This document shows positions 3,002-35,022 of a DNA stretch of 64,000 nt, one piece after another. Origin of the DNA: Macrostomum lignano (lineage: Eukaryota). Position 1 is the first letter of the stretch; every line of letters starts with the position of its first letter. The position numbers and the translations under genes are program-made. Location: contig NIVC01001374.1 of NCBI GenBank assembly GCA_002269645.1, positions 186,001 to 250,000 of the forward strand. Reading direction: 5' to 3'. The notes below the pieces were generated by a model. The model worked only from the letters and a program-made list of their open reading frames with translations. It was not told the DNA's origin and ran no database searches.

Positions 3002-3965
3002 TCAGCTGTCAAGATAGACTTCGGCCCGGATGACATGCCCGGCAAGCTGCAGACGTCGCTTGCTCAGCAGGACAGAAGGCCGCGTCAGGTGCGCTCTCGC
3101 TGGTACGGGGAGTCGGTCATCTTGCTGCCAGGGCCGCGGCGGGCGCCGAACGCGGCACGAATCAGAGCCGTATGCGCCACATATGCGCCGAGCTGCCTCT
3201 CGAGCGCCCAGTACAGGGTCGAGGGCGGTCTCGACAACAGCCTGGAACAGCTGCCATGGGAACCTGGAGCTGTCCAATATAGAGCCTCCGAAAGCAGCTC
3301 CGCCCACAGATCGAAAGGCGGCCCAGGCCTTGCCGGCCGCGCCGTCTCCCAGGTCGTCGCTCACATCCGTCACCAGCCCGCTAAAGTAGAGGGGCTGACG
3401 GCACTTCGGATGCACCGTCCCAGGGCCATCGTGCCGTCTCTGAGTCTTATCTTGGCGGGTAGATCGTGGGGAACTGTCAGCACCTCGGTATTTTTGGCGT
3501 TGATGACGAGGCCGACCCTTACAGCCGCCGCAATCAGGCCATCCAGCAGCCGTTGGGGCGCCTTCGGCCGTCGTAGACAGCATGCAGAGCGAGGTCGTCC
3601 GAGCTAGTAGCCGAGGAGGAACAGCCTCTTCTCCGGGTGTCGCCGACTGGCGTCGTCTTTGCAGTAGAAGGCCGTTCTCTGCTGTCGGCAGGCCGCCGCC
3701 TCCTGAGCACACAGTCCATCAGCAAAACAAAGAGGAGAAGGGCGCCAGAGTGTCACGGCCTGCAGCACTCCGGAGGTCGTGCTGAACAGGTCCGACGGTC
3801 CGTCGGCGTCGCTACCACAGCGGTCGTGTCCTGGTACAGCGCCATGTTTGCGAAGATCAGCTACTGCGGTACGGAGCATGTGAGGGAGCGCACCGCGGGC
3901 CACCGAGTCGAAAGCCTTGAGGAAGTCGACAAAGCTTGATGAAACTGTTTGATGAAACGCAATTA
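3002..3965 (-). mobile_element. Degenerate non-LTR retrotransposon (LINE, RTE-like) reverse transcriptase fragment
   Basis: Frameshifted RT motifs FVDFLKAFDSV and TTSGVLQ, plus C-terminal segments GKAWAAF...LFQAVVETAL and SKRRLQLAGHVIR typical of LINE ORF2. Confidence 0.8.
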
Positions 3966-4697
3966 AAATGCATAGCTTTTTTCTTGGCGCCATGCAAGTC
4001 TCAGCTGCCCCAACAGAATATACATGTATGATTGGATCATACCCATGCAGAACACGTGCATGCAGTACATATACATGTACATATGTGTACATGTAATTAT
4101 AAAGTACAAATAGATTTTACAAACGGAAACTGTAGATCTTTAATTTTTAAAGGGCTTCAAAATAAGGCAGTATAATTAGGTTCCCGTAAGAAATGAAATA
4201 CATTATACTCGCGTGTATTTTAGCTTGTTACACGTACACTGTTAAAGTAAAAATAAATTGTAGTAACATCCATCTCCTTGGCTTGGACGCTGAGTTAAAG
4301 ATTGTTTAGGCAGAATAATACATATATGTATTTATAAAAGAAAAACTTTCAATAGACTCGTTTGCTAACAAAAACTAGCAACAAAAATAGCACAAATAAT
4401 TAACATAAACTTAAAAATAGTTTAGCTTAATTTTACACAGAGAAGAAAGAGTCTTTTGACGACATGCTGACTGAGAAGTGAACGGGTTATTTAAAGTCTT
4501 CTATTAGCTAATGGTATTTACAGCTGTTTGCTAGTAATGAGGCTGGTCCAAAAGGCCCGATTAAATAGCCGTCAGCCAACCATATTGTAATAATTTCCTT
4601 TAACTTAATGGCTAACAAACTTCAACAGCAGTTTTTTTTGCTAAATTCATTCTTGACCATACTTAGTCCGGATCCTGACAGTAACTTATTAGAATGT

Positions 4698-6612
4698 TCA
4701 CGCGGTTTGTTTGTCAATACCAAGATAAGCTTTCGCTCCACCAGCGAGACCCGTTCTGTCGGGATCAATTGTTTGAGCTGTCGGATCACTTTTTCCGGAT
4801 TTGGATAGAGCAATGCCAGCAGCTCCAGTAGCGGCCAAGCCGGTTGTGGCAGCGCCAGCACCTATGAAGCCGATTTTCTTTTTGTGTGGACCGATAGCCC
4901 CACCCGCTTTTTTAAAGAAGCCTCCGCTCTTTTTGCAGGGCAGAAACGGATTCTGGCAGCCGGGATTATCCAAGTCGGCGGACTTTTTTGATTTCCCCTT
5001 TTGAGCCGCACCGGCCTTCTTACCCACGGATTTCACCAGGCCGCCCTCGTTGCAGGGAAAAAACGGATTTTTACACCCGGGATTATCCATGTCGGTAACG
5101 CTGGACTTCCTGTTTGCGTTGCCCGGCGCGTCGCCGGCTTTCTTAGCAGATTTCAGCTTAAAAAACGATTTCGCTCGCGATTTCACTGCAAACAAGGATT
5201 GAATAGATTGTAGCAATCACAGCTACTCTCACCAACCACAGCTGCTCTCACCAATCACAGCTTCTCTCACCAATCACAGCTGCTCTCACCAATCACAGCT
5301 GCTCTCACCAATCACAGCTTCTCTCACCAATCACAGCCTGCTCTCACCAATCACAGCCTGCTCTCACCAATCACAGCTACTCTCACCAACCACAGCTGCT
5401 CTCACCAATCACAGCCTGCTCTCACCAATCACAGCCTGCTCTCACCAATCACAGCTGCTCTCACCAATCACAGCTTCTCTCACCAATCACAGCCTGCTCT
5501 CACCAATCACAGCCTGCTCTCACCAATCACAGCTTCTCTCACCAATCACAGCCTGCTCTCACCAATCACAGCTTCTCTCACCAATCACAGCTGCTCTCAC
5601 CAATCACAGCTTCTCTCACCAATCACAGCTTCTCTCACCAATCACAGCCTGCTCTCACCAATCACAGCTTCTCTCACCAATCACAGCCTGCTCTCACCAA
5701 TCACAGCCTGCTCTCACCAATCACAGCCTGCTCTCACCAATCACAGCCTGCTCTCACCAATCACAGCCTGCTCTCACCAATCACAGCCTGCTCTCACCAA
5801 TCACAGCTTCTCTCACCAATCACAGCTGCTCTCACCAATCACAGCCTGCTCTCACCAATCACAGCTTCTCTCACCAATCACAGCTTCTCTCACCAATCAC
5901 AGCTTCTCTCACCAATCACAGCCTGCTCTCACCAATCACAGCCTTCTCTCACCAATCACAGCCTGCTCTCACCAATCACAGCCTGCTCTCACCAATCACA
6001 GCTTCTCTCACCAATCACAGCTTCTCTCACCAATCACAGCCTGCTCTCACCAATCACAGCTTCTCTCACCAATCACAGCTGCTCTCACCAATCACAGCTT
6101 CTCTCACCAATCACAGCTTCTCTCACCAATCACAGCCTGCTCTCACCAATCACAGCTTCTCTCACCAATCACAGCTTCTCTCACCAATCACAGCTTCTCT
6201 CACCAATCACAGCCTGCTCTCACCAATCACAGCCTGCTCTCACCAATCACAACCTGCTCTCACCAATCACAGCTTCTCTCACCAATCACAGCTGCTCTCA
6301 CCAATCACAGCCTGCTCTCACCAATCACAGCTTCTCTCACCAATCACAGCCTGCTCTCACCAATCACAGCTTCTCTCACCAATCACAGCCTGCTCTCACC
6401 AATCACAGCTTCCCTCGACTTCACTTCCTACTAATAAAATTATTGAATTTCTCAGACATTCAATGTGCAAATTAATAATAAAGCATTATTTCCATAAACT
6501 CGATAAACTCACATGATTTTACTGCTTTCGGGCAGCATTGGCCGCCGCTTGGAAACTGGCTGACAATCGTGAGCAGAATAAAGTAAATTGCTATAAAGCT
6601 TTGAGTTCGCAT
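4698..6612 (-). CDS. Secreted cationic protein A0, 195 aa, two exons (6612-6513, 5185-4698)
   Basis: Exon 1 MRTQSFIAIYFILLTIVSQFPSGGQCCPKAVKS (signal peptide) with phase-1 GTGAGT donor; acceptor ttgtttgcag; exon 2 continues in frame: K-rich, two DNPGCxNPFxPC repeats, Gly/Ala-rich hydrophobic stretch IGFIGAGAATTGLAATGAAGIAL. Confidence 0.8.
5215..6412. repeat. 19-20-bp minisatellite (ctctcaccaatcacagc[tt/ctg]), ~60 copies, in the A0 intron
   Basis: Direct tandem periodicity visible in the sequence. Confidence 0.97.
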
Positions 6613-7064
6613 GAGAAGTCTGCCTAAGCATTTACTGGAGCTTGTACATGAAGAAATTTGTGTGGGTCTGTTGTTTTAGTTGGAAAATCAATATTATTTC
6701 AATATTGGCCTTCGCTAGCTTGCTCGGTTATTTGGGGCAATCAGATCTTTTTCTATATCCAGAATTACTACATATAATTAATTCAGACCATAGATACAAC
6801 TACTCTCTATCGATTGATGTAGATACTATTTTTGTAACTTGAAGATTATTTAAACAAATACATATACATACAAATACAAATACAAATACATAAATAGTTT
6901 ACTGCTCGGCTATGAAGGAAGAATCCAATGGATTTAATTCAAGGTGAAGACGAAAGAGGTGATAGATTCCACACGCGACCTGCGAATTGCCTTTCCATCT
7001 GGCCCTCAAGTCCTTTGTAACTTCACAATAGCAATCATCTGGCCTACCTCCGCTCTCTAATCTC

Positions 7065-7825
7065 CCGTCTCATCTCCTCTCTCTCCTCTCTTTTCTTTCC
7101 TTTCATCTCTCATCTCTTCTTTCCTCTCATCTCTTCTTTCATCTCATTTCTTTCTTCATCTCTCCTCTCATCTATCATCTCATCTCTTCTTTTCTTTCAT
7201 CTCTCATCTCTCATCTCATTTATCCTCTCATCTCTTCTTTCCTTTCATCTCTCATCCCTCATCTCATCTATCCTCTTATCTCTTCTTTCCTCTCATCTCT
7301 TCTTTCATCTCTCATCTCTTCTTTCATCTCATCCCTTCTTTCATCTCTCCTCTCATCTATCATCTCATCTCTTCTTTCATCTCATCTCTTCTTTCATCTC
7401 TCCTCTCATTTATCCTCTCATCTCTTCTTTCCTTTCATCTCTCATCTCTCATCTCTCATCTCATCTATCATCTTATCTCTTCTTCCTCTCATCTCTCATC
7501 CTTCATCTCATCTATCCTCTTATCTTATCTTTCCTCTCATCTCTTCTTTCATCCCTCAACTCTTCTTTCATCTCTCATCTCTTCTTTCCTCATCTCCTCT
7601 TTCATCTCATTTCTTCTTTCATCTCTCCTCTCATCTATCATATCATCTCTTCTTTCCTTTCATCTCTCATCTCATTTATCCTCTCATCCCCTCTTTCCTT
7701 TCATCTCTCATATTATCTATCCTCTTATCTCCGCTTTCCTTTCATATTTGATCTCATCTATACTCTTATCTCCTCTTTCCTTTAATCTCTCATCTCATCT
7801 ATCCTCTTATCTTCTCCTTCCTCTT
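7065..7825. repeat. Pyrimidine-rich low-complexity tract (tctcatc/tcttctt)
   Basis: Nearly G-free CT/CAT-rich tract; a related purine-strand copy with similar flank lies at ~38840-39010. Confidence 0.9.
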
Positions 7826-8154
7826 CTAAGTCTAAGATTCTAATGTCAGGCTGTTTTGATGACGCTGTAGGCTTTTTACAATAAATAATTTGACATAGGC
7901 TGTGTCAAAACACAATTTTAACAAGCCCACCTACTCTCAGTTTCTCCTGTTTGCTTCTGATCGCATTTTAGATGAGCGGCGTCTTTCTTAAGATGCCAAT
8001 TTAAAATTGTCTATGGCAATTTATTGTCAAACCAACGAAATTTATTTATTGCCAACAAAAATTTTTCGTAATCTTCGTAGAAATATCGGTTTAATATGTT
8101 GTTCAACAGCCCTACAGGAGTGTCTGTTTAAAAAATAACTTAACTGCAACCTAA

Positions 8155-9555
8155 ATGGGATGCATAAGATTAGCATTGCTATTTAGCATTGTGCTGGTGA
8201 TCCTCATCGAACCTGGTGAAGGCTGTGTCAAGAAATTGAAGGCTTTGAAAGGTGGTAAGTAGTCAGTCTTGCAGTTGGCAATGAAATTGGTAAAACTTGA
8301 GACTGCTCGAATTCATATGGCCTTTTTTAACACGCTCGTACTGAGATCAACGCGGGAGGGAGCTGTCGTGCGATTCGGGCACAGAAAGTGTACATGCCTG
8401 ATGATTGGACAGTCAAAGGGCCGCTGTACACCCAAGGACAATTTAAGTAGAACGCAACACTCGAAATCTGTGGTAAATATTTTGAAGGCAACTTTTCGCC
8501 GAAAAATACAGTATAGGAGGATTTAATCTTTTCAGCACAAAAATTGTTATTGCTTTTGATAGGAGGCAGATCCAGTGTTCATCTTTTGGTATGTTGTGCC
8601 TTTTTTATTGCTCTATCGATATTCATAGAGCTTTTCGTTCAGAAATAGTTTTAAAGGAAGGTTTCACCGGAAAAATACATTAAGGAGATAGGAAATTTCA
8701 CGATTTTCAACACTAAAACAGTGATTGGGTCTCTTAACAGTGTCAGAGAAAGTTCTAATCACACTATTTTGTGCCTCACATGCTGCTCTCACGACGCATT
8801 AATCGATTTTTCATGTTAAATTGGTCTGTCACTTGAAAAAAACGTTTAAAATAATTACAAGACCAATATAAAGGCGAAAAGTTGCCTTCAAAACATTTAC
8901 CAATAGATTTCGAGTGAGGCGCGCTTGTGTACACCCTGTGTGAGGCGCGCTTGTGTACACCCTGTGTGAGGCGCGCTTGTGTACACCCTGTGTGAGGCGC
9001 GCTTGTTTACACCCTGAGTGAGGCGCGCTTGTGTACACCCTGTGTGAGGCGCGCTTGTGTACACCCTGTGTGAGGCGCGCTTGTGTACACCCTGTGTGAG
9101 GCGCGCTTGTGTACACCCTGTGTGAGGCGCGCTTGTGTACACCCTGTGTGAGGCGCGCTTGTGTACACCCTGTGTGAGGCGCGCTTGCATGCAGAATTGC
9201 CTCAGCGCTGCGGCTGTGGGAAGATGTCGCCGAAGCGTATCCCAATTATTATTGCTATTATTTTCTAAATGCCACTGGGCATTCATTCATTTCATTCTAA
9301 CAAAACTTCGCGCCCCCAGCTTTCAAGAGAGTCGGCAAGGTGTTCAAAATAGCCAGACGCCCAAAAGCCGCCAAAGTCATTGCGAATTCTGCGGACGACG
9401 TTGGCAAGGTGGCCAAGAAGTCCAAGAGCTTCAGCACGGCGCGCTCGCTCCTCATTGGTGGCACGGTTGGAGGTGCGGCACTGGGGGGCGCCGTGTACGT
9501 GGGGGTAAATGAGAAGAAAAAAGGCATGAGCAGCGGTTCGTACGTCACCCACTAA
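8155..9555 (+). CDS. Secreted cationic amphipathic/Gly-zipper peptide precursor A1, 111 aa, two exons (8155-8254, 9320-9555)
   Basis: Exon 1 MGCIRLALLFSIVLVILIEPGEG-CVKKLKALKG with GTAAGT phase-1 donor; acceptor cgcccccag; exon 2 AFKRVGKVFKIARRPKAAKVIANSADDVGKVAKKSKSFSTARSLLIGGTVGGAALGGAVYVGVNEKKKGMSSGSYVTH*. Exon 1 has a close paralogue in A2. Confidence 0.85.
8458..8916. mobile_element. MITE-like element with ~43-bp terminal inverted repeats in the A1 intron
   Basis: cactcgaaatctgtggtaaatattttgaaggcaacttttcgcc (8458-8500) is the near-perfect reverse complement of ggcgaaaagttgccttcaaaacatttaccaatagatttcgagtg (8873-8916); no TSD found. Confidence 0.65.
8913..9187. repeat. 26-bp minisatellite (gtgaggcgcgcttgtgtacaccctgt), ~10 copies, A1 intron
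   Basis: Direct tandem periodicity. Confidence 0.97.
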
Positions 9556-9949
9556 GAGACCCTGCACAGACATGCATGAGGAAATAATGTGTACTTTGCG
9601 GTATTCTTATACTCGAAATACTCGTTGCGTATTCAATTGTTAAGTATATAGCCAATTTACCAAAAATGTTTCTTTTAAAATTTATTTGTAAATCAGCACA
9701 GTTTCTTTTAAATTAGATCCAGATCTACGTAGTTTGCCAAAATTGCACTTTGAGCAGTTGAAATGTGTTTTTGTAAATTTTGTTTTACTGGATGTTATTT
9801 TTACCGGTATGTCATCGGCAGAGGACTCGTGACTTTAGTTTTAACATATAATATAAATAAAGCTTCGTAGACAGTTTCAGTTGTGCTTCACAGATTATAT
9901 CTCATATATTCTTATAGTGACTATGTACTCAATTCTTTTAAGCTTGCAT

Positions 9950-10425
9950 CATTCACCTTGGTAATCACCCACCTTGGTAATCACCCACCTTGGTAATCAT
10001 TCACCTTGGTAATCATCCACCTTGGTAATCGTCCACCTTGGTAATCATTCACCTTGGTAATCACCCACCTTGGTAATCACCCACCTTGGTAATCACCCAC
10101 CTTGGTAATCACCCACCTTGGTAATCACCCACCTTGGTAATCATCCACCTTGGTAATCACCCACCTTGGTAATCACCCACCTTGGTAATCACCCACCTTG
10201 GTAATCACCCACCTTGGTAATCGTCCACCTTGGTAATCATTCACCTTGGTAATCACCCACCTTGGTAATCACCCACCTTGGTAATCACCCACCTTGGTAA
10301 TCATCCACCTTGGTAATCGTCCACCTTGGTAATCATCCACCTTGGTAATCACCCACCTTGGTAATCATCCACCTTGGTAATCGTCCACCTTGGTAACCAC
10401 CCACCCATCACCATCCGCCTTGGTG
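9950..10425. repeat. 16-bp minisatellite (ccaccttggtaatcac), ~29 copies
   Basis: Direct tandem periodicity between A1 and A2. Confidence 0.97.
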
Positions 10426-10832
10426 ATCAGAATAAAATAAACCACAGCGTAATAATGTCATTTATTCGAATATAAACATTTAAATGCATTGCAAAGGTGG
10501 TCTTTGCTTAAGTTTTACTTAATTCTATCTCGAACAAAACTGCAAGACGACTAATTATAATTATACTGGTGCAGTGAATAAGAGCTTGTTGTTTGCTGCA
10601 GTAATTTGTTACTTTTTTAATAAAGGGACTTTTTTATTATTATACGGCAGTCAGATCATGTCTATGGTAATCTACTATCAACCTAAATGCTTGAAATCGC
10701 TAAAAAATTGATTGCCGAAAAAAGCAACTTGAGCCTCGATGCATCACCTGCCGGTTGTAGTTGTCATCTTGGTAGAAATATCACTTCAATAGAGCAGTCA
10801 TACAAGAGAGTAGAGAATAACTGGGACCTATA

Positions 10833-12331
10833 ATGGGTTACATAAGATTAGCATTGTTATTTACCATTGTGCTGGTGATCCTCATCGAACCTGGCGATGG
10901 CTGCTTTAGGAAATTGAAAGGTGGTAAGTAGTCAGCCTTGCTTATGTGCCTTAAAATTAGAAATTATACTATAATGCATAAGAGAATTACCCAATTGGCA
11001 TTAGTATCAAAATTGGTTTACAGTAGTGCTCTTGCGGAATCACCCGGTTGGTTCAGGGCTCATGGGGGGAATCACCCGGTTGGTTCAGGGCTCATGAGGA
11101 ATCACCCAGTTGGTTCAGGGCTCATGAGGAGTCACCCAGTTGGTTCAGGGCTCATGAGGAATCACCCAGTTGGTTCAGGGCTCATGAGGAATCACCCAGT
11201 TGGTTCAGAGCTCATGAGGAATCACCCAGTTGGTTCAGAGCTCATGAGGAATCACCCAGTTGGTTCAGGGCTCATGAGGAGTCACCCAGTTGGTTCAGGG
11301 CTCATGAGGAATCACCCAGTTGGTTCAGAGCTCATGAGGGGAATCATCCAGTTGGTTCAGGGCTCATGAGGAATCACCCAGTTGGTTTAGGGCTCATAGG
11401 GAATCACCCAGTTGGTTCAGGGCTCATAGGGAATCACCTAGTAGGTTCAGGCCTCTAGAGGAATCACCCTGTTAATTGATTTAGGGCTCATAGGGAATCA
11501 CCCAGTTGGTTCAGGGCTCATAGGGAATCACCTAGTAGGTTCAGGCCTCTAGAGGAATCACCCTGTTAATTGATTCAGGGCTCATAGGGAATCACCCATT
11601 TGGTTCGGGGGCGTATGGGGGAGTTGCCGAGTGGCCTCGAATGCGCTGCTAAGATTTAATTCTGAAAGAAAGAATGCTTATATCATAGGCCGAAAAGTTT
11701 TGATATTGGCGCACTTAAATGTGCTCGGGACTTTGTGCTGCCGTAATGGAAATATGTGCAACCGACAGCTCAGCCGCAGTTATCTCAGCGGCTGTTCAGT
11801 CCAAGGACTGGGGGGTCGCCACACACAGCCTCAATTACCCCAGCTAATGCTGGCACCCATTTTACAGCTGGGTGAACTGAAGCTATGCAGAGGTTAAGTG
11901 TCTTTCTCAAGGACACAAATTGTTCCAGTAGGATCAGGAATCGAACCCCCGACCTTGAACCACTAGGCTACAGTCCCCTGTGAATATTGTTACAACTATA
12001 GTATAGGCAGGCACTGATCCGAAACTGAGAGCCGCAACCCCAACCCGCTTCTAATTCGCACGCAGCGGTCAAGGCGGTTGGCAGGCGCGTCGGTCGAGTA
12101 TTCGGACGCGGAAAGAAGGCGCCGAAAGCGGCCGCCGATATTGCCCAAAGCGCCGAGAAGGTGGGCAAAACAGCTAAAAAAAGCCCCAGTGCGACAAAAA
12201 CAGCCGGAATCAGTGTTGGCACTGGAATGCTTGCCGCCGGTACCATTGGTGGTGTCAGTTTGGGCTACACAAATAACAAGAAGAATCGGATGCAAAGCGA
12301 GAGCGCTCCGCCTCCTGTCACATACAAATAG
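10833..12331 (+). CDS. Secreted cationic amphipathic/Gly-zipper peptide precursor A2, 118 aa, two exons (10833-10923, 12066-12331)
   Basis: Exon 1 MGYIRLALLFTIVLVILIEPGDG-CFRKLKG with GTAAGT phase-1 donor; acceptor ttcgcacgcag; exon 2 AVKAVGRRVGRVFGRGKKAPKAAADIAQSAEKVGKTAKKSPSATKTAGISVGTGMLAAGTIGGVSLGYTNNKKNRMQSESAPPPVTYK*, which aligns to A1. This frame is absent from the ORF track. Confidence 0.85.
11035..11605. repeat. 30-bp minisatellite (gaatcacccagttggttcagggctcatgag), A2 intron
   Basis: Direct tandem periodicity; explains the repetitive ORFs at 10938 and 11048. Confidence 0.97.
11745..11975 (-). mobile_element. tRNA-derived SINE copy
   Basis: Reverse complement of the SINE at 46318-46600 (tRNA-like head ggttcgattcc, body tttgtgtccttgag...cagttcacccagctgtaaaatgggtgccagcatt). 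Confidence 0.8.
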
Positions 12332-13305
12332 AAGCCGGCCACGGACAAAAATGTTGGCTACGACCTTACAATCTCTACGCTTAGTACACCATGACAGACA
12401 TTTACTATTTCTTTCCAGCTTTCATTTGTTAATTGAGTGCAATTTGATTTCCTCTACATTTTAAGGCCTCTGTAATGCATTTATACTCGTAGTTGTTTCA
12501 TTAGCATTGGCAACTTTTGTATTTAGTTTATCTGATGCTGGAAAAATGCTTAAACACTTTCAACAATTACAGTTAGACAGAATACAGACTCATGTTCCAC
12601 TAAGTGTGGCGGCAGTGAATTTCGAAAAACTTTACTTGACTTTCCTATTAATTGCTTATCAGGTTAAAAGTACATGTGCACACCGTGGCTGCATGGAGAG
12701 GAAGATCACAGAAAAGCGAAAGCAACACTGCTTCCAAGGGGGGTTGTGCCTGCCCGAGGAAAAAACAAACCAAACTTGCTAATTACTTGATAAGTCAACA
12801 ATGGAACCTCGTGGCGAGGACAGCCTAAGTAAAGTACATTCGATAAGTACTTTCCAAGTACTTGAATGTAGAGACAGGCGTGTACTTTGTAAACTTTTCA
12901 AGTCGATTGAACTTGGACAAAAGCATTGCATATACTGTTTAAGTTCATGACAATGATACTTTGCAAACTTGATAAGTCAACAATGTCATCCAAGTGCATG
13001 GTTGACTTTGAAAGTTTAGCATGTGTATTTTTCCGGTTGGCATCTCTGGGACTAAAGTTCGCAAAGTTTTTTTTGTTAAAATTTACGTTTTGATCGATTG
13101 CGAACTCGCAGAGTTTGCTATAGCCATAAAGCATGCACAGTTAATAGTTAAAAGATTGCCCACAGTCTACAGCAGCCACCCTATCTATGGGCTCACTCAC
13201 GGGTAAAGAAGCGGCTGAGAAAATCATAGTTAGGTAGACAAAAGTGCACTTTGCGAGACGCGGGCTAGAAGAAGAAGCTCGGACTGCAAATCAGATTAGC
13301 TTGAA

Positions 13306-13855
13306 ATGGTGCTATTGAAATGGTCGATGAAATGCCTGTTGCTGGCAGTCATTCTGCTAGCTGTGCTGCCGGACTATAGCAGCGGATGCAAAGCGGCGGT
13401 CAATAAGGGTGAGTTGGCAATTCCAACCGCATGTTTTCATTCAGTAAAAACAGTAAAAAGGACTATAAGAGGGGAATGTCATGCCATTAACAGCCGTGAT
13501 GACAAAGCCTTAAAAAGTCAGTCAGTTTATGAACAGACTCTGACAAAACACACTTTTCCCCATGCTATATTTAACAGTGAAAGAGTTCTACAAGTCTTAC
13601 ACGCTAAAGAAAAAACCGAAAGAGGAAACTGACGAAGCCGAAAAGAAGAAAAAGCAGGAGGCAGAAGAAAAAGAATACAAGAAGAAATTGGACGAGGCCA
13701 AAGCGAAAATGCGACAGCGAAACAAACAGCTCCTTGAAACCATAGCAACCGAGCGCACCAAGCAGGAGTCTCTGCTGGAGCAGCGGAAGAAGAAAGGCGA
13801 GAAGAAGATCGCAGGCATTGTGGCCACCACCACTGGTACGCAAATAATCCTCTAG
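13306..13855 (+). CDS. Secreted Lys/Glu-rich coiled-coil protein B1, 126 aa, two exons (13306-13408, 13578-13855)
   Basis: Exon 1 MVLLKWSMKCLLLAVILLAVLPDYSSG-CKAAVNK, phase-1 GTGAGT donor; acceptor tttaacag; exon 2 VKEFYKSYTLKKKPKEE...KKKLDEAKAKMRQR...KIAGIVATTTGTQIIL*; homologous to B2. Confidence 0.85.
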
Positions 13856-14294
13856 ATTGCGGAGACCGCTCCGCAACCATCAGCTGCAGTTTTATTTATT
13901 AAGGACGAAACCGAGATAATTGACAGTTTAAGGCGCAGCTCAAGACAAAAGCCTGAGAAGTTTTGTTAATATTCTAGAGTTCTACTGGTCAGGAAATTTA
14001 ATTTCGTTTACTTTACTGGATCGGTTTATAAATAATACACAGGACAGTGTTTTAACTCATTTTTAATTGCCTGTTTTATTGCAATTTCTCATTCAATTAG
14101 ATGTATTGCGATTTTCAAGAGGATAGAGAAGTACGAGCTATTTGTGCAGCACTGTATTGTCTATTGTGGTATTAGAGAGAAAAAAACTGCTATGGCAATT
14201 ACCGCTGGCACGGACTGCTCGGTTTCAGCTTGCAGGAGTGTAAGCTGCCGGGTAGGATTAATTATGGAGGGCGCTGAAGCGTCAGCACCAGGAT

Positions 14295-14592
14295 ATTTAG
14301 CACCAGTGGTTTTAGCACCAGTGGCTTTAGCACCAGGGGCTTTAGCACCAGTGGCTTTAGCACCAGTGGTTTTAGCACCAGTGGTTTTAGCACCAGTGGT
14401 TTTAGCACCAGTGGCTTTAGCACCAGGGGCTTTAGCACCAGTGGTTTTAGCACCAGTGGTTTTAGCACCAGTGGCTTTAGCACCAGGGGCTTTAGCACCA
14501 GTGGCTTTAGCACCAGTGGCTTTAGCACCAGTGGTTTTAGCACCAGTGGTTTTAGCACCAGGGGCTTTAGCACCAGGGGCTTTAGCACCAGG
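14295..14592. repeat. 15-bp minisatellite (ttagcaccagtggct), ~20 copies
   Basis: Direct tandem periodicity; source of the PVALA/GAKAT/LKPLV ORFs. Confidence 0.97.
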
Positions 14593-15265
14593 GACGATTG
14601 CATGGAAAGGCGGAAGGCCATGCAGCCACCAGTCCAGTTGAACGCGGAGCTCGCCCGCCACGGGAATCCGGCGATGACACCCGTTGATGGTGTTGGTGAC
14701 GTCAATTCGAGCTCGCAGAAAGACTCGAGCGGGGCGAGCCACCTTGCAAAAACCAGCCGATTTTGCCCACCAGCTTTTGATGTTGAAGCTTTGACAGACT
14801 CTTAGCGCTCAAACCTCCATGCAGCAACATCCGCAGCTCATCTGTCTTGCTCTGCGGCAGGGATAGCAGCTAGACCGGATGTGCTGTCGATTTGCACTCC
14901 CAGGAATGTGATACACGTAGCAGGTGGGCTGGTATTTTCCCAATCGATGCAGCTAATCCCAGCGTGGGAGGCAAGTCGTATGAGCTTCTAAAAAAACAAC
15001 AACGCACACCGCCGGGGAACAGACTACAGTTCACAAAGGTCGGTGTCGGATCAGTCTTCTCACAGCGCTGGCTCTCTGAAGGCGGCTACAGCGTGCACCT
15101 GGCCAATCACCCCAGCGTAATCCAGCTAGCAATCCGCGAAGCACATCCGGAAGTACAACACAATTAGAATAAATAAAATGCAGGTATAAAAGTGGGAACA
15201 TAAAGTCAATATTTGCTAGTCTGAACTCGAAATGTGAGTAAAGGAAACGACAGTGTACGTCAATA

Positions 15266-16337
15266 TTGTGGGTCAATATCGTACGTCAATATCAGTCACT
15301 TCGCCCTGGAGTGCACCCTGGCCAAAGTCCTAACACCATCCTTCGAAACCGCATTCAACCCATCATCAACCAGAGGCTTCTCAATATCCAGAACGGCTTC
15401 CGACCTGGACGGTCAACAGCAAAAACAAGTCGCTGCGGTCCGGTGCATCATAGACACCTGCAAGACTCGCCAAAAGGCGGTGTCAATTGTTTTTGCAGAT
15501 TTGTGCAAAGCTTTTGACTCAGTCAGCCGGGCGGCCAGGCCATTGCGTAGCTCCTCCAGCAGCATGGAGTTTATCAGATGCTGGTCCAGGCGATCATGGA
15601 CCTCTACAGCTCATCCAAGGCGCTTTCGTCTAGACTGACCACGGCCCTAAAGCTGAATTGACAACCACTTCCGCAAAGCGACACCTGTTTGTATTCGTCA
15701 TCCTGATCGACTTCGTCATGCGGTTGGCTCTGCGCGATGAAGACGGCTATGAAGTGGTGTTTCGCCGTAGCTCCCGCTTTGCCTGCGTCAAGCCGACCTG
15801 CCTCGCCTGCGCCGACGACCTGGCGCTGACCTGCTGCAGTCCCGAAGCTGCGCAGACGGCGGTGAGTCGGCGGACCAACGAGGGGAAGCGCGTGGGGCTC
15901 CACATCAACTACGGCAAGGCAGAGGTGCTGCATGTTGGCATTGCCAACTCTCCACTGCTGCTTCTGCCGGACAGCAACACCATCGCCCTGTGCAACCAGT
16001 TCAAGTATCTGGGGTGTCCTGGTCTCTGACCCGGATGTCATTGTCAACAACCGCAAGCACAGCCTGGTGGGCCTCCCACCTTCTCCGCTCCATCTTCAAC
16101 TACTGGCTCGCCACCGACAGCCTGAACGTCGCCCTATTCCGCTCGGCAGTTGAGACGGTGCTGACCTACGGGCTGCTGGAAACTGTTCCCATGACTGCCA
16201 CTCGTCAGGCGAGCTTGGAGGGCTGCCATCGCCACCTCATGCACAATGCCCTGGGCATCCGGTTCCCCGAGCGCGTGAGCAACGCCGAGCTGGCGGCCCG
16301 GACCCGCGTGGTCGCAGAGACGACGCCAGATGTCTGA
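15266..16337 (+). mobile_element. Degenerate non-LTR retrotransposon (LINE) reverse transcriptase fragment
   Basis: Frameshifted RT motifs QNGFRPGRST, VFADLCKAFDSVSR, ACADDLAL, GLHINYGKAEVL, QFKYLG and LFRSAVETVLTYG. Confidence 0.85.
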
Positions 16338-16492
16338 CTATCGACCAACAGTATAATAATGTGCAAATAAGGAACAGGAATACAAATCAGCAGTAATATA
16401 TTAGATGTGAAGTAACCAGTAATTGCGGCAATTAAGCTTTATATACGCAAAGCGCGCTATTACTAAAATGCATTATTATATGGTACATAGCG

Positions 16493-17238
16493 ATCGCAGA
16501 AGTGCGCCAAAATGAACTAGTTGAATTAGTGGGACATCGCAGAAGTGCGCCAAAAAGAAGTAGTTGAATTAGTGGGACATCGCAGAAGTGCGCCAAAATG
16601 AACTATTTGAATTAGTGGGACATCGCAGAAGTGCGCCAAAATGAACTAGTTGAATTAGTGGGACATCGCAGAAGTGCGCCAAAAAGAAGTAGTTGAATTA
16701 GTGGGACATCGCAGAAGTGCGCCAAAATGAACTAGTTGAATTAGTGGGACATCGCAGAAGTGCGCCAAAATGAACTAGTTGAATTAGTGGGACATCGCAG
16801 AAGTGCGCCAAAAAGAACTAGTTGAATTAGTGGGACATCGCAGAAGTGCGCCAAAAAGAACTAGTTGAATTAGTGGGACATCGCAGAAGTGCGCCAAAAT
16901 GAACTAGTTGAATTAGTGGGACATCGCAGAAGTGCGCCAAAAAGAACTAGTTGAATTAGTGGGACATCGCAGAAGTGCGCCAAAAAGAACTAGTTGAATT
17001 AGTGGGACATCGCAGAAGTGCGCCAAAATGAACTAGTTGAATTAGTGGGACATCGCAGAAGTGCGCCAAAAAGAACTAGTTGAATTAGTGGGACATCGCA
17101 GATGTGCGCCAAAATGAACTAGTTGAATTAGTGGGACATCGCAGAAGTGCGCCAAAATGAACTAGTTGAATTAGTGGGACATCGCAGAAGTGCGCCAAAA
17201 TGAACTAGTTGAATTAGTGGGACATCGCAGAAGTGCGC
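16493..17238. repeat. 43-bp minisatellite (cgcagaagtgcgccaaaatgaactagttgaattagtgggacat), ~17 copies
   Basis: Direct tandem periodicity with high identity. Confidence 0.97.
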
Positions 17239-17490
17239 GACCAAAAGTTAAGCAGTTTTAGAAACCCATTGTACTGCGACGTTTAGGTTTAGTTTAGCTT
17301 TGTTTAGTTTAGCACAATGATATGTTGCATACACAAATTTCTCCCTCCCACTCTCTCCATTTTCTTTCATTATTCCCGATAAGATCAGAAAAAGCCCAGT
17401 AAATAATAAAATGCCCGAAATGGCTGCATTTCAGTCTGGTACACTTCGACTCATGGATTTGCAGATGGATGAGAGGCTGCAGCTTCGTCG

Positions 17491-18936
17491 TCATTGTGAC
17501 CGCAGTGCATTCAGTTGCTCTACTAGCCAAGGGAGATACGCAGTGGAGCGTAGTTTCCTTTTAGCGGACCAGAAGCCGGCTACAACGACATATCTACTCT
17601 TCATGTTGTCGGTTACTTCGTTAATGCTGACATAAACTGGACACATTTCCATAACAGACCTTTTAAAAATTGGAAAGCCATCGATGCACACTGAATACGT
17701 GAGGTCACTTCGTGAGCCCAGTGCAATAGACCGCTTGAATGCCGCATACGCAGTTCCGCTACCCATGTAAAGACGTCCCACGTTCGCCGGCTGATCGACG
17801 GGATATATTACGTGGTCTAGAAGATGGCATTCTTCGATCATCTGTCGTACTTGGCTGCCTATATCCATTCGCCAGAAGTGCCCAACAGACTCTGGCGATT
17901 CCAATCTAGCATTACAATGCGGACAGTGATTTGGGCGCGGTTGTTGCATCTCGCGATCGCAGCTCAGACAATACACTGAAGGTCTGCATCTCGTGTAGGA
18001 GTACGGTGTCAGGTTTAGCAAATTGTCCAGCATTTGACGGGTCTGTGGAAACGCAGCATTTACAGGAAGCACGGCCTTTGTGTAGGCAAGCAATTTGTCG
18101 ACACCATGTACAGAAAGATTTTGAGCAAAGGCCAGACACTGAGCTAGGGTTCCAATTGCAGCGTATGACACAGTAGCGCCAGGATAGGCGGCCAACTGGC
18201 AAAAGTTACGCAGTTTAGCGTCGTCTGAATCATAATCATCGCCGTCACCGTCATCGCTGTATTCGGCATCGTCGGTAGGCGCTTGGCTGGCAGAGCTTTC
18301 GGTAGCTTCGCTGGCATCGCCGGCTTCACTGGCAGTTTCGCTGGCAGAGCTTTCGGTAGCTTCGCTGGCATCGCCGGCTTCACTGGCAGTTTCGCTGGCA
18401 GAGCTTTCGGTAGCTTCGCTGGCATCGCCGGCTTCACTGGCAGTTTCGCTGGCAGAGCTTTCGGTAGCTTCGCTGGCATCGCCGGCTTCACTGGCAGTTT
18501 CGCTGGCAGAGCTTTCGGTAGCTTCGCTGGCATCGCCGGCTTCACTGGCAGTTTCGCTGGCAGAGCTTTCGGTAGCTTCGCTGGCATCGCCGGCTTCACT
18601 GGCAGTTTCGCTGGCAGAGCTTTCGGTAGCTTCGCTGGCATCGCCGGCTTCACTGGCAGTTTCGCTGGTGGAGGCTTCGCCGGTAGATGGCGGTTGTGAA
18701 GTAGCTTCGCCGGTAGATGGCGGTTGTGGAGTACCTTCGCTACCGATGTCGTCGTCTGGATGACGGCGCTTATTACCACGATTCGTCTGTGGATTTCCAA
18801 TGGCGGCGCCCATTGCAGTCGTTCCAGATTGCAACCACTGTTGTCGCCTTTGAAATAGAAGCTGCACTGTCTTGCGTTCTCGAAATCGTTTCACTCTTAA
18901 ACGATTCATAATGGCGCGGCGTTGCTGGTCTTCCAT
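17491..18936 (-). mobile_element. CACTA/EnSpm-type transposase, C-terminally truncated, with an internal 54-bp coding repeat
   Basis: IDGFPIFKRSVMEMCPVYVSINEV...VVVAGFWSAKRK...YLPWLVEQLNAL matches the tnp2/Transposase_21-type catalytic start. It is preceded by a CxxC...CPHC zinc motif and ~7 copies of ASETASEAGDASEATESS (18283-18670). Confidence 0.75.
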
Positions 18937-19309
18937 GATAGAGATTTTTGTTCTTAATGATTCTTATCCTCTGCAAAAGTGGCAAACGTTCATGAGAAAT
19001 TAGTCAGTTGCTTCGTGGGTTACCGTCACTTCTCCTTATATACTGATTTGAAAGAGAACGTATCCCTGGGCATAGGTAATAAATTTGCTTCCCTATTCAT
19101 AACTATCACTTGTCCATACCTAACTATATATAACTGGGTATCCATGTGACCTATTTCAGGAGAGGCTACTCTGTAAAATTGTAAAGTAAAAATTCAGGCA
19201 ACAATAACACGTGCGTCACGCCGCACTCAAATTAAGCAACATAGTAGCAGCCTATTATGCAATGAAGACGACAACAGTTGGTAGAAAGCGACAAGTAGTA
19301 AACTCCACA

Positions 19310-20065
19310 ACAGAACAAAACGGTCACAAAATACGGTAACAGTGAACGGTAACATGTGACCCTGAACAAACGGTCACAAAATACAGTCACATTGAACGGT
19401 CACATGGTGACCCTAAACAAAACGGTCACAAAATACGGTCACATTGATCGGTAACATGTGACCCTAAACAAAACGGTCACAAAATACGGTCACATTGATC
19501 GGTAACATGTGACCCTAAACAAAACGGTCACAAAATACGGTCACATTGATCGGTAACATGTGACCCTAAACAAACGGTCACAAAATACGGTCACATTGAT
19601 CGGTAACATGTGACCCTAAACAAACGGTCACAAAATACGGTCACATTGAACGGTCACATGGTTACCCTAAACAAAACGGTCACAAAATACGGTCACATTG
19701 ATCGGTAACAGTGACCCTGAACAAACGGTCACAAAATACAGTCACATTGAACGGTCACATGGTTACCCTAAACAAAACGGTCACAAAATACGGTAACATT
19801 GATCGGTAACATGTGACCCTAAACAAAACGGTCACAAAATACGGTCACATTGATCGGTAACATGTGACCCTAAACAAAACGGTCACAAAATACGGTAACT
19901 ATGAACAGTCACATTGTTACCCTAAACAAAATGGTCACAAAGTACGGTAACATTGAACAGTCACCTGGTGACCCTGAACTAAACAGTCACAAATACGGTA
20001 AAAAATGGTAACTGGTGACCGTAACGGTAAAAAACACGGTAACAGCCCCTTTTTGTGACCGTTTC
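19310..20065. repeat. ~51-bp tandem repeat (aaacggtcacaaaatacggtcacattgatcggtaacatgtgaccctaaaca), probable subterminal repeats of the CACTA element
   Basis: Tandem periodicity upstream of the transposase; the core aaacggtcacaaaa also occurs inverted (ttttgtgaccgttt, ~20051-20064), as in CACTA subterminal arrays. Confidence 0.8.
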
Positions 20066-20725
20066 GTTTTATACGGGTTAGAGATTTAAACTTATTTGGA
20101 GCCACTGCAGGAGACTGTAAATTTTGGTGCACTGTGTGAATGCGGGCAGTGTGCGGTATCTTGGTTTCTGTTGCAGTTTTTCAAAGTTTTTAACTACCTC
20201 GTTGACCGAAGATGGCCAGACCGATGATGGTTGAAGAGGAAGAACCAATGGGATGGGTCGGAGAAGATACGTCGTAGTCATGTCAACCCTGATGTTGGTA
20301 CCTGACGAGTTGTGAGTTCTCAGCTTATTAATCTAGACTATAAATTCTTCCCTTAGTTTCATTTTGTAGTTATTTTAGACACGCTTAAATAGGTCACAAT
20401 TAGTTTGCAATCGAGTGGTTGAGAGTGAGAAAGTGTTTTGGCTGCTAGATCGAGTTGGATTCAAGCTGCCATTTGTTGGCTTTAACATGTAGCTGAGTGA
20501 ATGACGAATTCCAATCACTCTTCACCCGCGCGGTTCCCTGCATCTTTTTACCCAGAAACAAAAAGTAAATAAGTGGAATTTTACGCGCGCACTGAAGCCT
20601 GAGTGAGAAGGCCATAGACTATACTCTAGGGCGAGCTGTCAAAGTGTAGTTTACTAGGAAAGTAAAGCTGCGAGGCTAAGCCCATCTATCTTATCGGCAA
20701 CGCTCCTTTCGGATGCCAACAAGTA

Positions 20726-21234
20726 ATGGCATTTTTCAGATACCTAGCATTGCCTGCAATCTTGTTCGCGGTTTTTGTACAATACAGCGAAGGATGCAAA
20801 AAACCGGCTCCTGTGCAGCAGGGTGAGTGAGTCAAAGTTGTGCCGCCGTTACTATTATGTTATTATTGGACCAGCATATTAAAAGTAGCGATCTGTAGGA
20901 CCTGATTCGATGCAGTCATTGAACCCGCCCCACAGTTCAGCAGAATGTTGAAGCAAACTATGAGCTAGAACAGCGGCTGGCGCAAGAACAGCGCGAGCGT
21001 GACAACGCCGAGAGGTTGCGGCGAAGAGCCGAACAAAAGAAGAAAGAAGAGCAATACAAGAAGGAATTGAAGGAGGCAAAAGCGAAAATGAAGGAGCGCA
21101 AAGAGAAGATTCTAAACTTGGTCGCGGCCCAGCGATCATACCAGATTGCTCTGATGAAGAAGCGCAAAAAGAACGGGGCTCAGAAAATATACGGTGTCGA
21201 CGCGGAGGTAACAGGCACCCAGCTTGTCATATGA
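20726..21234 (+). CDS. Secreted Lys/Glu/Gln-rich coiled-coil protein B2, 131 aa, two exons (20726-20822, 20936-21234)
   Basis: Exon 1 MAFFRYLALPAILFAVFVQYSEG-CKKPAPVQQ, phase-1 GTGAGT donor; acceptor ccccacag; exon 2 VQQNVEANYELEQRLAQEQRER...QYKKELKEAKAKMKERK...KIYGVDAEVTGTQLVI*; homologous to B1. Confidence 0.85.
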
Positions 21235-22614: not shown

Positions 22615-23190
22615 TTATTTCGACAGGCTGTTCAGAAGGCCGAGCAGCCGGTCCAGTGTGCTCACAATGGCATCAGTCTTGGCGCAGTCCGAACTCTCAA
22701 GCAGGCGAGCCTGATAGTAATCAATCCGGTCAAGAGTGGCCGCCCGCAGTCTCTCTTCAACACAGACGCGGTCCTTGCCAGCCTGTGCTTGGCTGCGCGA
22801 TGGCGCCTGCGAGCTGGCAACGGAGGCGGCGGCTGCGGCGGCCTCTCTGGCGTGGACTCGGGCGGCCGACTCCGACTGAGCCGGGTCGTCTTTGCTAACG
22901 TCGGACTCGAGCTCGCGACAGGCGATGCAATAGTTGCCACCGCCGTTGCTCACCTCCATGAGGATGGTGCCGCAGTCGGGGCACACGTGGTCCAGCATTT
23001 TCCAGCCTTTGAGCAGGTACTCGCCCATCCGTTTGGCGATCTTGTCCGAGCGCTCGCGGCGAGCTTTCAGAACTTTCTGCTCCGCCTCGGTTGGCGGGCG
23101 CCACTCGGCATCGAAGCTGGCGTCGCCATTGTCGGCAGTTGATGATGAAGATGCGGCTGCTTGTTCGCGGAGTAGACTGCGAAAATCCAT
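22615..23190 (-). CDS. ZNRD2: ZNRD2/SSSCA1-like zinc-ribbon protein, single exon, 191 aa
   Basis: RRERSDKIAKRMGEYLLKGWKMLDHVCPDCGTILME...YCIAC matches the Auto_anti-p27/SSSCA1 zinc ribbon. Confidence 0.9.
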   Translation of the reverse strand: MDFRSLLREQAAASSSSTADNGDASFDAEWRPPTEAEQKVLKARRERSDKIAKRMGEYLLKGWKMLDHVCPDCGTILMEVSNGGGNYCIACRELESDVSKDDPAQSESAARVHAREAAAAAASVASSQAPSRSQAQAGKDRVCVEERLRAATLDRIDYYQARLLESSDCAKTDAIVSTLDRLLGLLNSLSK

Positions 23191-28800: not shown

Positions 28801-29951
28801 GTTGGTCAGGTGCTGCTCAGGGGTTGGTCAGGTGCTGCTCAGGGGTTGGTCAGGTGCTGCTCAGGGGTTAGTCAGGTGCTGCTCAGGGGTTAGTCAGGTG
28901 CTGCTCAGGGGTTAGTCAGGTGCTGCTCAGGGGTTAGTCAGGGGTTGGTCAGGAGTTAGTCAGGAGCTGCTCAGGGGTTAGTCAGGGGTTGGTCAGGTGC
29001 TGCTCAGGGGTTAGTCAGGGGTTGGTCAGGTGCTGCTCAGGGGTTAGTCAGGGGTTGGTCAGGTGCTGCTCAGGGGTTAGTCAGGGGTTAGTCAGGGGTT
29101 GGTCAGGTGCTGCTCAGGGGTTAGTCAGGTGCTGCTCAGGGGTTACTCAGGGTTTGGTCAGGTGCGGCTCAGGGGTTAGTCAAGTGCTGCTCTTGGGTTA
29201 CTCAGGGGTTAGTCAAGTGCTGCTCTTGGGTTACTCAGGGGTTAGTCAGGTGCTGCTCTTGGGTTACTCAGGGGTTAGTCAGGTGCTGCGCAGGGGTAAC
29301 TCAGGGAATCAGAATAACTGCTAAGAGGCGGCTCCTACGATTCGTAAAGTCGGTTTCTCTTAATTCCCAAGTCTGTTTAGTGAAGATTCTCAATGTCTAA
29401 GGCTTTCAATTACCCAGCAGTTGGTCCGCGGTGCCGCAGTCACCAGCCTGAGCAGCCGCTAGCAATCTCTGCTCCAGCTGTTTGCCAGCGTGAATCTCAG
29501 CGGCAGCAATCATGTCGGCAACCTCAGGCGTTTTAGCCAAATCTGACGGGGTCTGATTGGCGTAGTTTGTCAGGCGGACATCGCAGCCGGCGTCTAGGAG
29601 GATTCGAACCACGGACGACCGGCCAGTATAGCTGGCCTTGTGCAAAGGAGTGTCGCCATTGTCGGCTGGGGCGTCGACATCGGCGCCATGTTCCAGCAGG
29701 AATCGGCAGGCCTCAGAGTGGCCAAAGAAAGCAGCCAGGTGCAGCGGAGTCCAACCAAAGAAGCTCTTGGAGTAGCTGGGTAGGTTCAAGCTGAAGCCGG
29801 GCATTGCTCGGTTGAGGCTGAGCAATTGTTGCAAATCGTCTACTGAATTGTTTCTGGCGCACTGGCTCACCAGCTCGCGAAGCTCATCCAGCTCTAGCAG
29901 GCAGCCGTTGGCATAGTCCGTTTTCGCCTCAGGCTGGTGGCACTCGGTCAT
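25812..29951 (-). CDS. OSBPL1A: OSBPL1A/ORP1L-like ankyrin-PH-coiled-coil-FFAT protein, 584 aa, four exons (29951-29414, 28487-28019, 27256-26986, 26288-25812); no ORD seen
   Basis: Ankyrin repeats (GWTPLHLAAFFGH, GDTPLHKASYTG, GNTPLHLAA), PH domain (LLGWRTIHVELDNAELRYY...RQLWLTAIRRH), coiled coil, FFAT-like EDETFADCLS. Splice phases 1/2/0 join in frame, and the domain order and sequence match the ORP1L N-terminal half. Confidence 0.8.
26395..26972. repeat. 32-33-bp intronic minisatellite (gctgtaattgactgtctgtgtcagactgcttca)
   Basis: Direct tandem periodicity. Confidence 0.95.
27270..27525. repeat. 20-bp intronic minisatellite (gattgagattctctggtctg)
   Basis: Direct tandem periodicity. Confidence 0.95.
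27740..27980. repeat. 16-18-bp degenerate intronic repeat (gatagagataaggg..)
   Basis: Imperfect tandem periodicity. Confidence 0.85.
28595..29305. repeat. Compound intronic minisatellite (ggtgctgctcaggggttagtca / ggggttggtca)
   Basis: Mixed 11- and 22-bp units in tandem. Confidence 0.92.
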
Positions 29952-34954: not shown

Positions 34955-35022
34955 TTAGGGTTAGGTTAGGGTTAGGGTTAGGGTTAGGGTTAGGGTTAGG
35001 GTTAGGCTAGGGTTAGGGTTAG
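34955..35022 (+). repeat. Interstitial telomeric repeat (TTAGGG)~11
   Basis: Direct reading; a degenerate copy lies at ~34535-34585. Confidence 0.92.

Follow-up and report, generated by a model that had tools for sequence, protein, structure and literature searches.

Cecropins (PF00272) combine a signal peptide, a cationic amphipathic N-terminal helix, a Pro/Gly hinge and a more hydrophobic C-terminal part, with a mature peptide of 31–39 amino acids (aa) built of two hinge-joined helices. In flatworms, mesco-2 of the cestode Mesocestoides corti is an antimicrobial peptide (AMP) with a sub-micromolar minimal inhibitory concentration and a membrane mechanism (PMC11546468), and the secretomes of 127 helminth species have been surveyed with SignalP and 11 AMP predictors (Irvine et al. 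2023, PLoS Pathog 19:e1011508, PMC10414684). Here, we compare with these systems a tandem pair of two-exon genes from the flatworm Macrostomum lignano, A1 and A2, which lie on the plus strand at positions 8155–12331 of a 64,000-nucleotide stretch of contig NIVC01001374.1 (positions 186,001–250,000; hereafter called the window, to which all coordinates refer unless another copy is named). A1 and A2 are old tandem duplicates that encode Macrostomum-restricted, transcript-supported, polycationic proteins of the secretory pathway, for which a role as membrane-active antimicrobial-type peptides, predicted from their layout, is a plausible hypothesis.

Exon 1 of A1 (8155–8254) encodes a signal peptide of 23 codons (8155–8223) and the first ten mature residues, CVKKLKALKG, and ends in phase 1 at a GTAAGT donor. 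Beyond a phase-1 intron (8255–9319), exon 2 (9320–9555) supplies the rest of the first helix (residues 24–44, ending at 9351), a proline hinge and a second amphipathic stretch (residues 49–69), followed by a hydrophobic, Gly/Ala-rich segment (residues 77–95, 9448–9504), an EKKK cap and a 12-aa tail that runs to the TAA stop codon (9553–9555). A2 is laid out in the same order: exon 1 (10833–10923) encodes the signal (10833–10901) and the residues CFRKLKG and likewise ends in phase 1 at a GTAAGT donor, and exon 2 (12066–12331), separated from it by a phase-1 intron (10924–12065), encodes a GR-rich amphipathic helix, a proline hinge, a second amphipathic stretch, a hydrophobic segment (residues 78–97, 12206–12265), an NNKKNR cap and a 15-aa tail, with the TAG stop codon at 12329–12331. 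Both genes belong to a cluster of five small orphan genes (4698–21234; order B on the minus strand, A1, A2, C, D), which share one plan: an exon for the signal peptide is joined, across a phase-1 intron, to one exon for the mature chain.

The spliced models of A1 (111 aa, BOX15_Mlig005534g1) and A2 (118 aa, BOX15_Mlig014360g1/g2) are identical to the GenBank proteins PAA68729.1 and PAA68730.1, respectively, which are placed on a 302,685-bp contig of assembly GCA_002269645.1. As the GenBank annotation of this assembly was derived from a genome-guided RNA-seq transcriptome (PMC5730564), the identity provides evidence for transcription and for the splice junctions of both genes. The A1–A2 locus is present in at least three assembly copies (the window and two further copies, L001 and L003), which are mutually 94–97% identical and fit the known redundancy of the genome of M. 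lignano, a hidden polyploid (PMC5730564). We rejected the possibility that A1 and A2 are pseudogenes, given that three genomic copies retain intact reading frames and splice sites for both genes, which are also included in the RNA-seq-derived annotation. In tblastn cross-matches, the two genes recognize each other with E = 6e-10 and 7e-9 in exon 2 and with E = 4e-11 and 1.5e-9 in exon 1, and their paralogy is well above chance.

A HMMER profile built from A1, A2 and their copies returned M. lignano proteins alone from 1.84 billion representative proteins, and word-indexed database searches with A1 and A2 found only M. lignano hypothetical proteins as relatives. Pfam scans of A1, A2, their isolated hydrophobic segments, the neighboring genes B and C and a UniProt model of this locus (P0002, see below) gave nothing meaningful, and PDB sequence searches with A1 and A2 yielded a designed helical repeat at E = 1.5 only. 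Judged by these searches, A1 and A2 are orphans restricted to Macrostomum.

The signal peptides of A1 and A2 contain a 13-residue hydrophobic core, followed by EPGEG or EPGDG, respectively, with small residues at positions −1 and −3. As is typical of linear cationic AMPs, these signals are predicted to be cleavable; SignalP places the cut before Cys24 (Irvine et al. 2023, supplementary file 5), and this listing independently confirms the cleavage site. The Cys thereby left at mature position 1 is the sole Cys of the mature chain in both proteins. The initial annotation, drawn up from the DNA sequence alone, had counted differences at three of 23 signal residues, which we could verify (C3Y, S11T and E22D), and its estimate of a net charge of about +17 over 88 and 95 aa was also accurate, with K+R = 20 and D+E = 3 in each mature chain. 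Furthermore, the cationic amphipathic N-terminal helix that it had proposed was supported by moment calculations: the maximal 18-residue hydrophobic moment is 0.66 in A1 and 0.73 in A2, with P = 0.04 and 0.008, respectively, in composition shuffles. The second amphipathic stretch, past the proline, reaches moments of 0.53 (A1) and 0.54 (A2). AlphaFold2 placed a helix at residues 23/24–44 in A1 and A2, with low confidence (predicted local distance difference test, pLDDT, ~50). A net positive charge and an amphipathic helix, both hallmarks of linear cationic AMPs, are thus found in A1 and A2, in a K/A/G/S-rich, low-complexity composition. Between A1 and A2, roughly one in two aligned exon 2 positions is identical. 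The mature chains had been described as only partly alignable, which overstates their divergence, with the middle stretch, PKAA..IA.SA..VGK.AKKS, reaching 68% identity.

Two other candidate assignments were rejected on the basis of the protein sequences. The mature chains contain many dibasic sites, but these sites and one Gly-basic site are not shared by the two proteins, and repeated peptides are missing, which speaks against a neuropeptide precursor. N-myristoylation at the MGC start of A1 is ruled out by Leu at position 6, by the MGY start of A2 and by the presence of a signal peptide.

The general plan of cecropins, i.e. signal, cationic amphipathic N-terminal helix, Pro/Gly hinge and more hydrophobic C-terminal part, is shared by A1 and A2, and to this extent the term cecropin-like chosen in the initial annotation is apt. 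They are not members of the family, however. At E ≤ 10, hmmscan against Pfam retrieved Cecropin (PF00272) for neither A1 nor A2, and BLASTP of A1 and A2 against cecropin A at E ≤ 100 gave no alignment; in a shuffle test, alignment to cecropin scored no better than alignment to its shuffled versions. In addition, the mature chains are ~2.5 times longer than those of cecropins and, unlike these, have two amphipathic stretches as well as a polar tail past the hydrophobic part.

Among experimentally validated peptides, a closer likeness is seen between the N-terminal helices of mesco-2, FRRIGRAFSRVGRGIGRGF, and of A2, FRKLKGAVKAVGRRVGRVFGRG, which are both arginine/glycine-punctuated and both derived from flatworms. 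A2 and mesco-2 are 35% identical over 34 residues, starting from residue 2 of both mature peptides and with a Pro at approximately residue 27. The pairwise comparison yielded E = 0.002 and a shuffle P = 0.0017 for the aligned N-terminal 28–34 residues, with a weaker result for A1 (P = 0.04). On the other hand, mesco-2 and mesco-3 are 40 aa long, end in a disulfide loop, CLGRC, are encoded by intronless genes and lack a hydrophobic Gly-rich segment (PMC11546468), whereas A1 and A2 have a single mature Cys and no loop. We regard the resemblance between A2 and mesco-2 as a lead rather than as homology; it may reflect convergence.

A1 and A2 have previously been recorded as hypothetical proteins, and an AMP-like reading of both has already been published as an in silico prediction. 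Supplementary file 5 of Irvine et al. contains BOX15_Mlig005534g1/g3 and BOX15_Mlig014360g1/g3 in fAMP-LP groups 110 and 128 (PMC10414684). There, BOX15_Mlig005534g1 (mature sequence CVKK..., 88 aa) was positive in 72.7% of the tools (8/11) and BOX15_Mlig014360g1 (mature sequence CFRK..., 95 aa) in 81.8% (9/11), while the g3 copy of the latter reached 90.9% (10/11). Groups 110 and 128 were flagged as "Same genome", a class that was dropped from the prioritized list and never synthesized (PMC10414684). The anchor potential of the hydrophobic segment, the locus and the exon-wise divergence, which we address here, were not considered by Irvine et al. In supplementary file 5, another M. lignano AMP-like precursor is composed of a signal, an acidic pro-piece, RRRR and FRWRKAIRVAGKVAKAVL, and is positive in 11/11 tools; its VAGKVAK motif recalls VGKVAKK of A1.

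The hydrophobic segment lies within an uncharged stretch that extends from S76 to N97 in A1 (22 aa) and from T76 to N101 in A2 (26 aa) and is directly followed by the basic residues EKKK or KKNR. The GxxxG-rich hydrophobic stretches and the caps, EKKK and NKKNR, quoted in the initial annotation are all present. The segment is non-amphipathic, with a hydrophobic moment of 0.07 (A1) or 0.08 (A2), and its Kyte-Doolittle mean over 19 residues, 1.5 in A1 and 1.3 in A2, remains under the usual cut-off of 1.6. Plain Hessa-scale sums amount to +3.5 kcal/mol (A1) and +4.4 kcal/mol (A2), compared with +4.2 kcal/mol for melittin, +3.9 kcal/mol for the PrP hydrophobic tract and −2.9 kcal/mol for the glycophorin A anchor. 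The hydrophobicity of the A1 and A2 segments is thus marginal, close to that of melittin and the PrP tract and unlike that of the glycophorin A anchor.

Each of the two segments in the window contains three GxxxG motifs and, as in glycine-zipper membrane segments, one perfect GxxxGxxxG. A GxxxGxxxG register arises in composition shuffles with P = 0.26–0.28, and A2 of L001 has G...A...A in its place, the A2 copies differing by G93A/V94G/G97A inside the hydrophobic segment. Pfam Gly-zipper models did not match A1, A2, the isolated hydrophobic segments or P0002. The glycine zipper invoked in the initial annotation can thus not be distinguished from an effect of composition (P ~0.27), and its register is lost in a genomic copy; the conserved feature is a small-residue, moderately hydrophobic tract rather than a zipper register. 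The UniProt entry P0002, from the ML2 assembly, is a chimeric model that fuses part of A1 exon 2 with A2 exon 2 in a shifted frame. UniProt names it "Gly-zipper_YMGG domain-containing protein", a name that current Pfam does not bear out. A glycosylphosphatidylinositol anchor was ruled out, as a polar, basic tail of 15–20 aa follows the hydrophobic segment.

We next consider how the two exons have diverged, using proportions of synonymous (pS) and replacement (pN) differences from Nei-Gojobori counts, with the paralogous neighbors C and D as an internal control. Between A1 and A2, the signal shows pS = 0.18 and pN = 0.06, and exon 2 shows pS = 0.82, i.e. saturation, and pN = 0.39 (pN/pS ~0.47); the difference in synonymous changes between exon 1 and exon 2 is significant (Fisher P = 3e-6). 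Identical residues are encoded by the same codon in 18/23 cases in exon 1 vs 12/37 cases in exon 2 (P = 0.001). At the nucleotide level, A1 and A2 are 89% identical in exon 1 (91% in the signal), 83% in the 12 nucleotides preceding the ATG and 85% in intron positions +1 to +20, and elsewhere 38% in the deeper intron, 51% in exon 2 and 46% in the 3′ untranslated region (UTR). The 5′ flank of A1 (7955–8154) is ~65% identical to that of A2 (10633–10832), as opposed to ~40–46% in introns and 3′ UTRs; this shared similarity is probably due to a common promoter/5′ UTR or represents a piece of a conversion tract. In the control pair, C and D, both exons are evenly diverged (pS 0.86/0.89, pN 0.33/0.36). 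As the control pair is equally diverged and the charge is identical in A1 and A2, the mature exon is best described by ordinary divergence of old duplicates, with presumed purifying selection for charge and layout. The anomaly is exon 1, which is conserved at the nucleotide level together with its immediate flanks. Conservation at silent sites and over ~20 nucleotides into the intron cannot be explained by protein-level selection, and the likeness of the two first exons instead points to gene conversion or a nucleotide-level constraint.

These results bear on the diversifying selection suggested in the initial annotation. In this view, purifying selection would keep the signals alike and positive selection would separate the mature peptides, as in conotoxins and frog skin peptides. 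Like the signals of those families, the A1/A2 signal is conserved far beyond the mature region (87% vs ~50% amino-acid identity), here including synonymous sites and 20 nucleotides of intron. A ratio of replacement to silent substitution rates (dN/dS) above 1, as expected for the mature region of such families, is not found in exon 2, where pN stays below the saturated pS. The initial annotation had itself named a dN/dS well below 1 in exon 2 as refuting its proposal, and by this standard diversifying selection fails. Comparison of the near-identical genomic copies of A1 and A2 revealed six replacement differences in the coding sequence and no silent ones; five of the six are located at residues 93–97, where the hydrophobic tract reaches its C-terminal end. 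This pattern would fit positive selection, but the 6:0 ratio is not significant (Fisher P = 0.18, synonymous sites vs non-coding substitutions, at a non-coding divergence of 1.6%), and the differences look like two or three clustered multi-nucleotide events. The conservation of the signal exon at silent sites and into the intron, the like pN and pS in both exons of C and D, and the constancy of charge, K+R and D+E between A1 and A2 also argue against positive selection, and we regard diversifying selection as very doubtful. L003 combines an L001-type A1 with a window-type A2, which suggests exchange between copies.

With a probability of roughly 0.4, and thus tentatively, we favor a predicted function of A1 and A2 as secreted or granule-stored, membrane-active peptides of the host-defense type. 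In such a scenario, the 23-residue signal would be cleaved, leaving Cys at mature position 1, and the two proline-separated, cationic amphipathic helices would bind anionic membranes. The small-residue, Gly/Ala/Ser/Thr-rich segment would then insert, self-associate and permeabilize the membrane, and the single N-terminal Cys could yield disulfide-linked dimers. A number of observations weigh against this proposal. AMP predictors have high false-positive rates on lysine-rich sequences, and A1 and A2 lack an anionic pro-piece. The AlphaFold2 models are poor (pLDDT ~50), and the best-conserved mature part is the middle stretch (68%) rather than the N-terminal helix (46%), with the tail after the hydrophobic segment also 50% conserved between A1 and A2. 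The resemblance to mesco-2 is not significant at database scale, as no non-Macrostomum protein was retrieved in the profile search of 1.84 billion proteins, and look-ups of the gene identifiers in full text and in the supplements of six M. lignano papers returned no expression or functional entry. The hydrophobic segment with its basic cap is arranged like a textbook type I membrane anchor, and its Eisenberg mean hydrophobicity (0.70 in A1, 0.59 in A2) is close to the anchor threshold. Lastly, mature linear AMPs are usually shorter than 60 aa, and 90% of linear AMPs have fewer than 50 aa, far below the 88 and 95 aa of A1 and A2 (unless further cuts occur at their dibasic sites), and the pipeline of Irvine et al. 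included no transmembrane filter (PMC10414684).

Some of these points lend themselves to a different explanation, in which A1 and A2 are type I single-pass membrane proteins that act as tethered binders of polyanions or membranes and not as free lytic peptides. Their 53-aa polycationic region would then be outside or lumenal and the Gly/Ala segment would span the membrane, possibly oligomerizing by small-residue packing, with EKKK or NNKKNR as the stop-transfer, positive-inside flank and the 12–15-aa tail in the cytosol. A cleaved signal, an uncharged segment of at least 19 residues and a C-terminal basic flank, which together make up a type I layout, are all found in A1 and A2, whose uncharged stretches of 22 and 26 aa directly precede the basic cluster. 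The segment moment of 0.07–0.08 and the Eisenberg means are typical of membrane spans, and the tail has remained 50% conserved between paralogs with saturated silent sites. An architectural precedent is provided by the Plasmodium ETRAMPs, in which signal, lysine-rich stretch, transmembrane segment and charged tail follow each other in the same order (PMC3696012). Conversely, the Kyte-Doolittle means fall short of 1.6, the Hessa sums of +3.5 and +4.4 kcal/mol predict poor translocon integration of a lone anchor, the A2 copies tolerate G93A/V94G/G97A within the segment, and the neighbors C and D, built on the same plan with a signal ending in G|C, lack a hydrophobic segment and are plainly secreted. 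We consider membrane anchoring possible and a close rival; release of A1 and A2 as membrane-active peptides is slightly favored due to the marginal hydrophobicity of the segment, the AMP-predictor scores and the cluster context. Alternatively, A1 and A2 might be secreted structural or packaging proteins, polycationic components of gland secretions such as mucus, rhabdites, adhesive or seminal fluid, whose basic helices would bind glycans, nucleic acids or surfaces and whose Gly/Ala tract would drive self-assembly in the manner of PrP/Shadoo. PrP and Shadoo also combine a basic region with an Ala/Gly-rich hydrophobic tract, and the hydrophobicity of the PrP tract resembles that of the A1 and A2 segments. 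A cluster of five lineage-specific genes for small secreted proteins with differing mature chemistries is typical of gland-product loci, and the K/A/G/S-rich, low-complexity composition and a length above that of typical AMPs would also suit such a role. However, repeats and DOPA- (3,4-dihydroxyphenylalanine-) or Cys-rich cross-linking motifs are missing, and simple polyanion binding does not require the strong amphipathicity of the N-terminal helix, making this alternative unlikely. ETRAMPs and PrP/Shadoo come from other taxa and have no sequence relationship to A1 and A2, so that they serve as layout analogies only. A more far-reaching scheme, which we deem quite improbable, would unite several of these elements: owing to the marginal Gly/Ala-rich segment, the same chain would occur in two forms, one with a type I anchor that presents the helix pair at epithelial or granule membranes and one that is released and lytic; the N-terminal helix with its GR/GK punctuation would go back to an old AMP module of flatworms that the cestode mesco peptides also contain; and the signal exon would be kept alike by recurrent gene conversion as a secretion cassette.

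The neighbors of A1 and A2 vary the common plan. Cleavage as predicted, between G and C, gives the mature chains of A1, A2, C and D a Cys at position +1, the sole Cys in each, which suggests that these proteins may form disulfide dimers or undergo other Cys modification; B has QCC at this point. Gene B (minus strand; exon 1, 6612–6513; exon 2, 5185–4698) encodes 195 aa (PAA68728.1) and has an intron filled by a 19-bp minisatellite. It follows the plan of A1 and A2, with a K-rich mature exon and a Gly/Ala-rich hydrophobic tract, IGFIGAGAATTGLAATGAAGIAL, and its mature chain (4698–5185, minus strand) carries the Cys motif D(M/L)DNPGC(K/Q)NPF(F/L)PC twice, upstream of IGFIGAGAATTGLAATGAAGIAL. A database search with gene B found only the protein itself and no relatives outside M. 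lignano. Gene C (plus strand; exons 13306–13408 and 13578–13855; 126 aa, BOX15_Mlig025199) encodes a signal ending in G|C, followed by a helical mature chain rich in K and E, and it corresponds to fAMP-LP group 143, with 6/11 tools positive (Irvine et al. 2023, PMC10414684). Gene D (plus strand; exons 20726–20822 and 20936–21234; 131 aa) is a paralog of C. The K/E-rich helical mature chains of C and D end in TGTQ(I/L)(I/V)(L/I) and are devoid of a hydrophobic tract. Comparison of gene D (20936–21234) with its L001 copy (17068–17574) revealed 12 replacement and three silent changes, clustered at residues 35–68, with omega ~1. B differs from its copy by one replacement and three silent changes and C by no replacement and one silent change; both look constrained.

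Repeats are frequent in and around these genes. The introns of B, A1 and A2 each contain a minisatellite, with units of 19, 26 and 30 bp (5214–6410, 8914–9187 and 11028–11610, respectively) that are not related to each other, and the spacer between A1 and A2 holds a further, likewise unrelated one with a 16-bp unit (9954–10405). Across the whole window, TRF returned 61 rows, among them a 3.3-kb array of a 23-mer at 30802–34120. The A2 intron also includes, on the minus strand at ~11780–11960, a tRNA-like stretch with a GGTTCGATTCC-type T-arm, which is probably the remnant of a short interspersed nuclear element; ARAGORN and Rfam gave no match over the region, including this stretch.

Elsewhere in the window, a minus-strand open reading frame of 481 aa (17491–18936) includes a 54-bp coding unit repeated seven times without mismatch (ETASEAGDASEATESSAS), and its C-terminal part is rich in Cys and His. 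A Pfam scan of this reading frame gave no convincing match, and it may be transposon-derived. Relative to L001, the window carries a 1.7-kb insertion at 997–2658. Reverse-transcriptase-like fragments occur among regions 3002–4092 and 15234–16337, with RVT_1 matched at 15658–16029 (E = 9e-5). Other features are an intronless homolog of Auto_anti-p27 (SSSCA1) at 22615–23190, an ankyrin-repeat exon at 29406–29951 and an interstitial (TTAGGG)n run at 34955–35022.

The A1–A2 locus offers a caution for the interpretation of similar gene pairs: positive selection should not be deduced solely from a signal that is conserved next to a mature peptide that is not, as comparison with C and D revealed ordinary divergence of the mature exon and identified the signal exon as the anomaly. 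If active, A1 and A2 would be the first experimentally supported host-defense peptides of a macrostomorph flatworm. As transgenesis and RNA interference are established in M. lignano, the function of such lineage-specific effectors would be directly testable in the animal.

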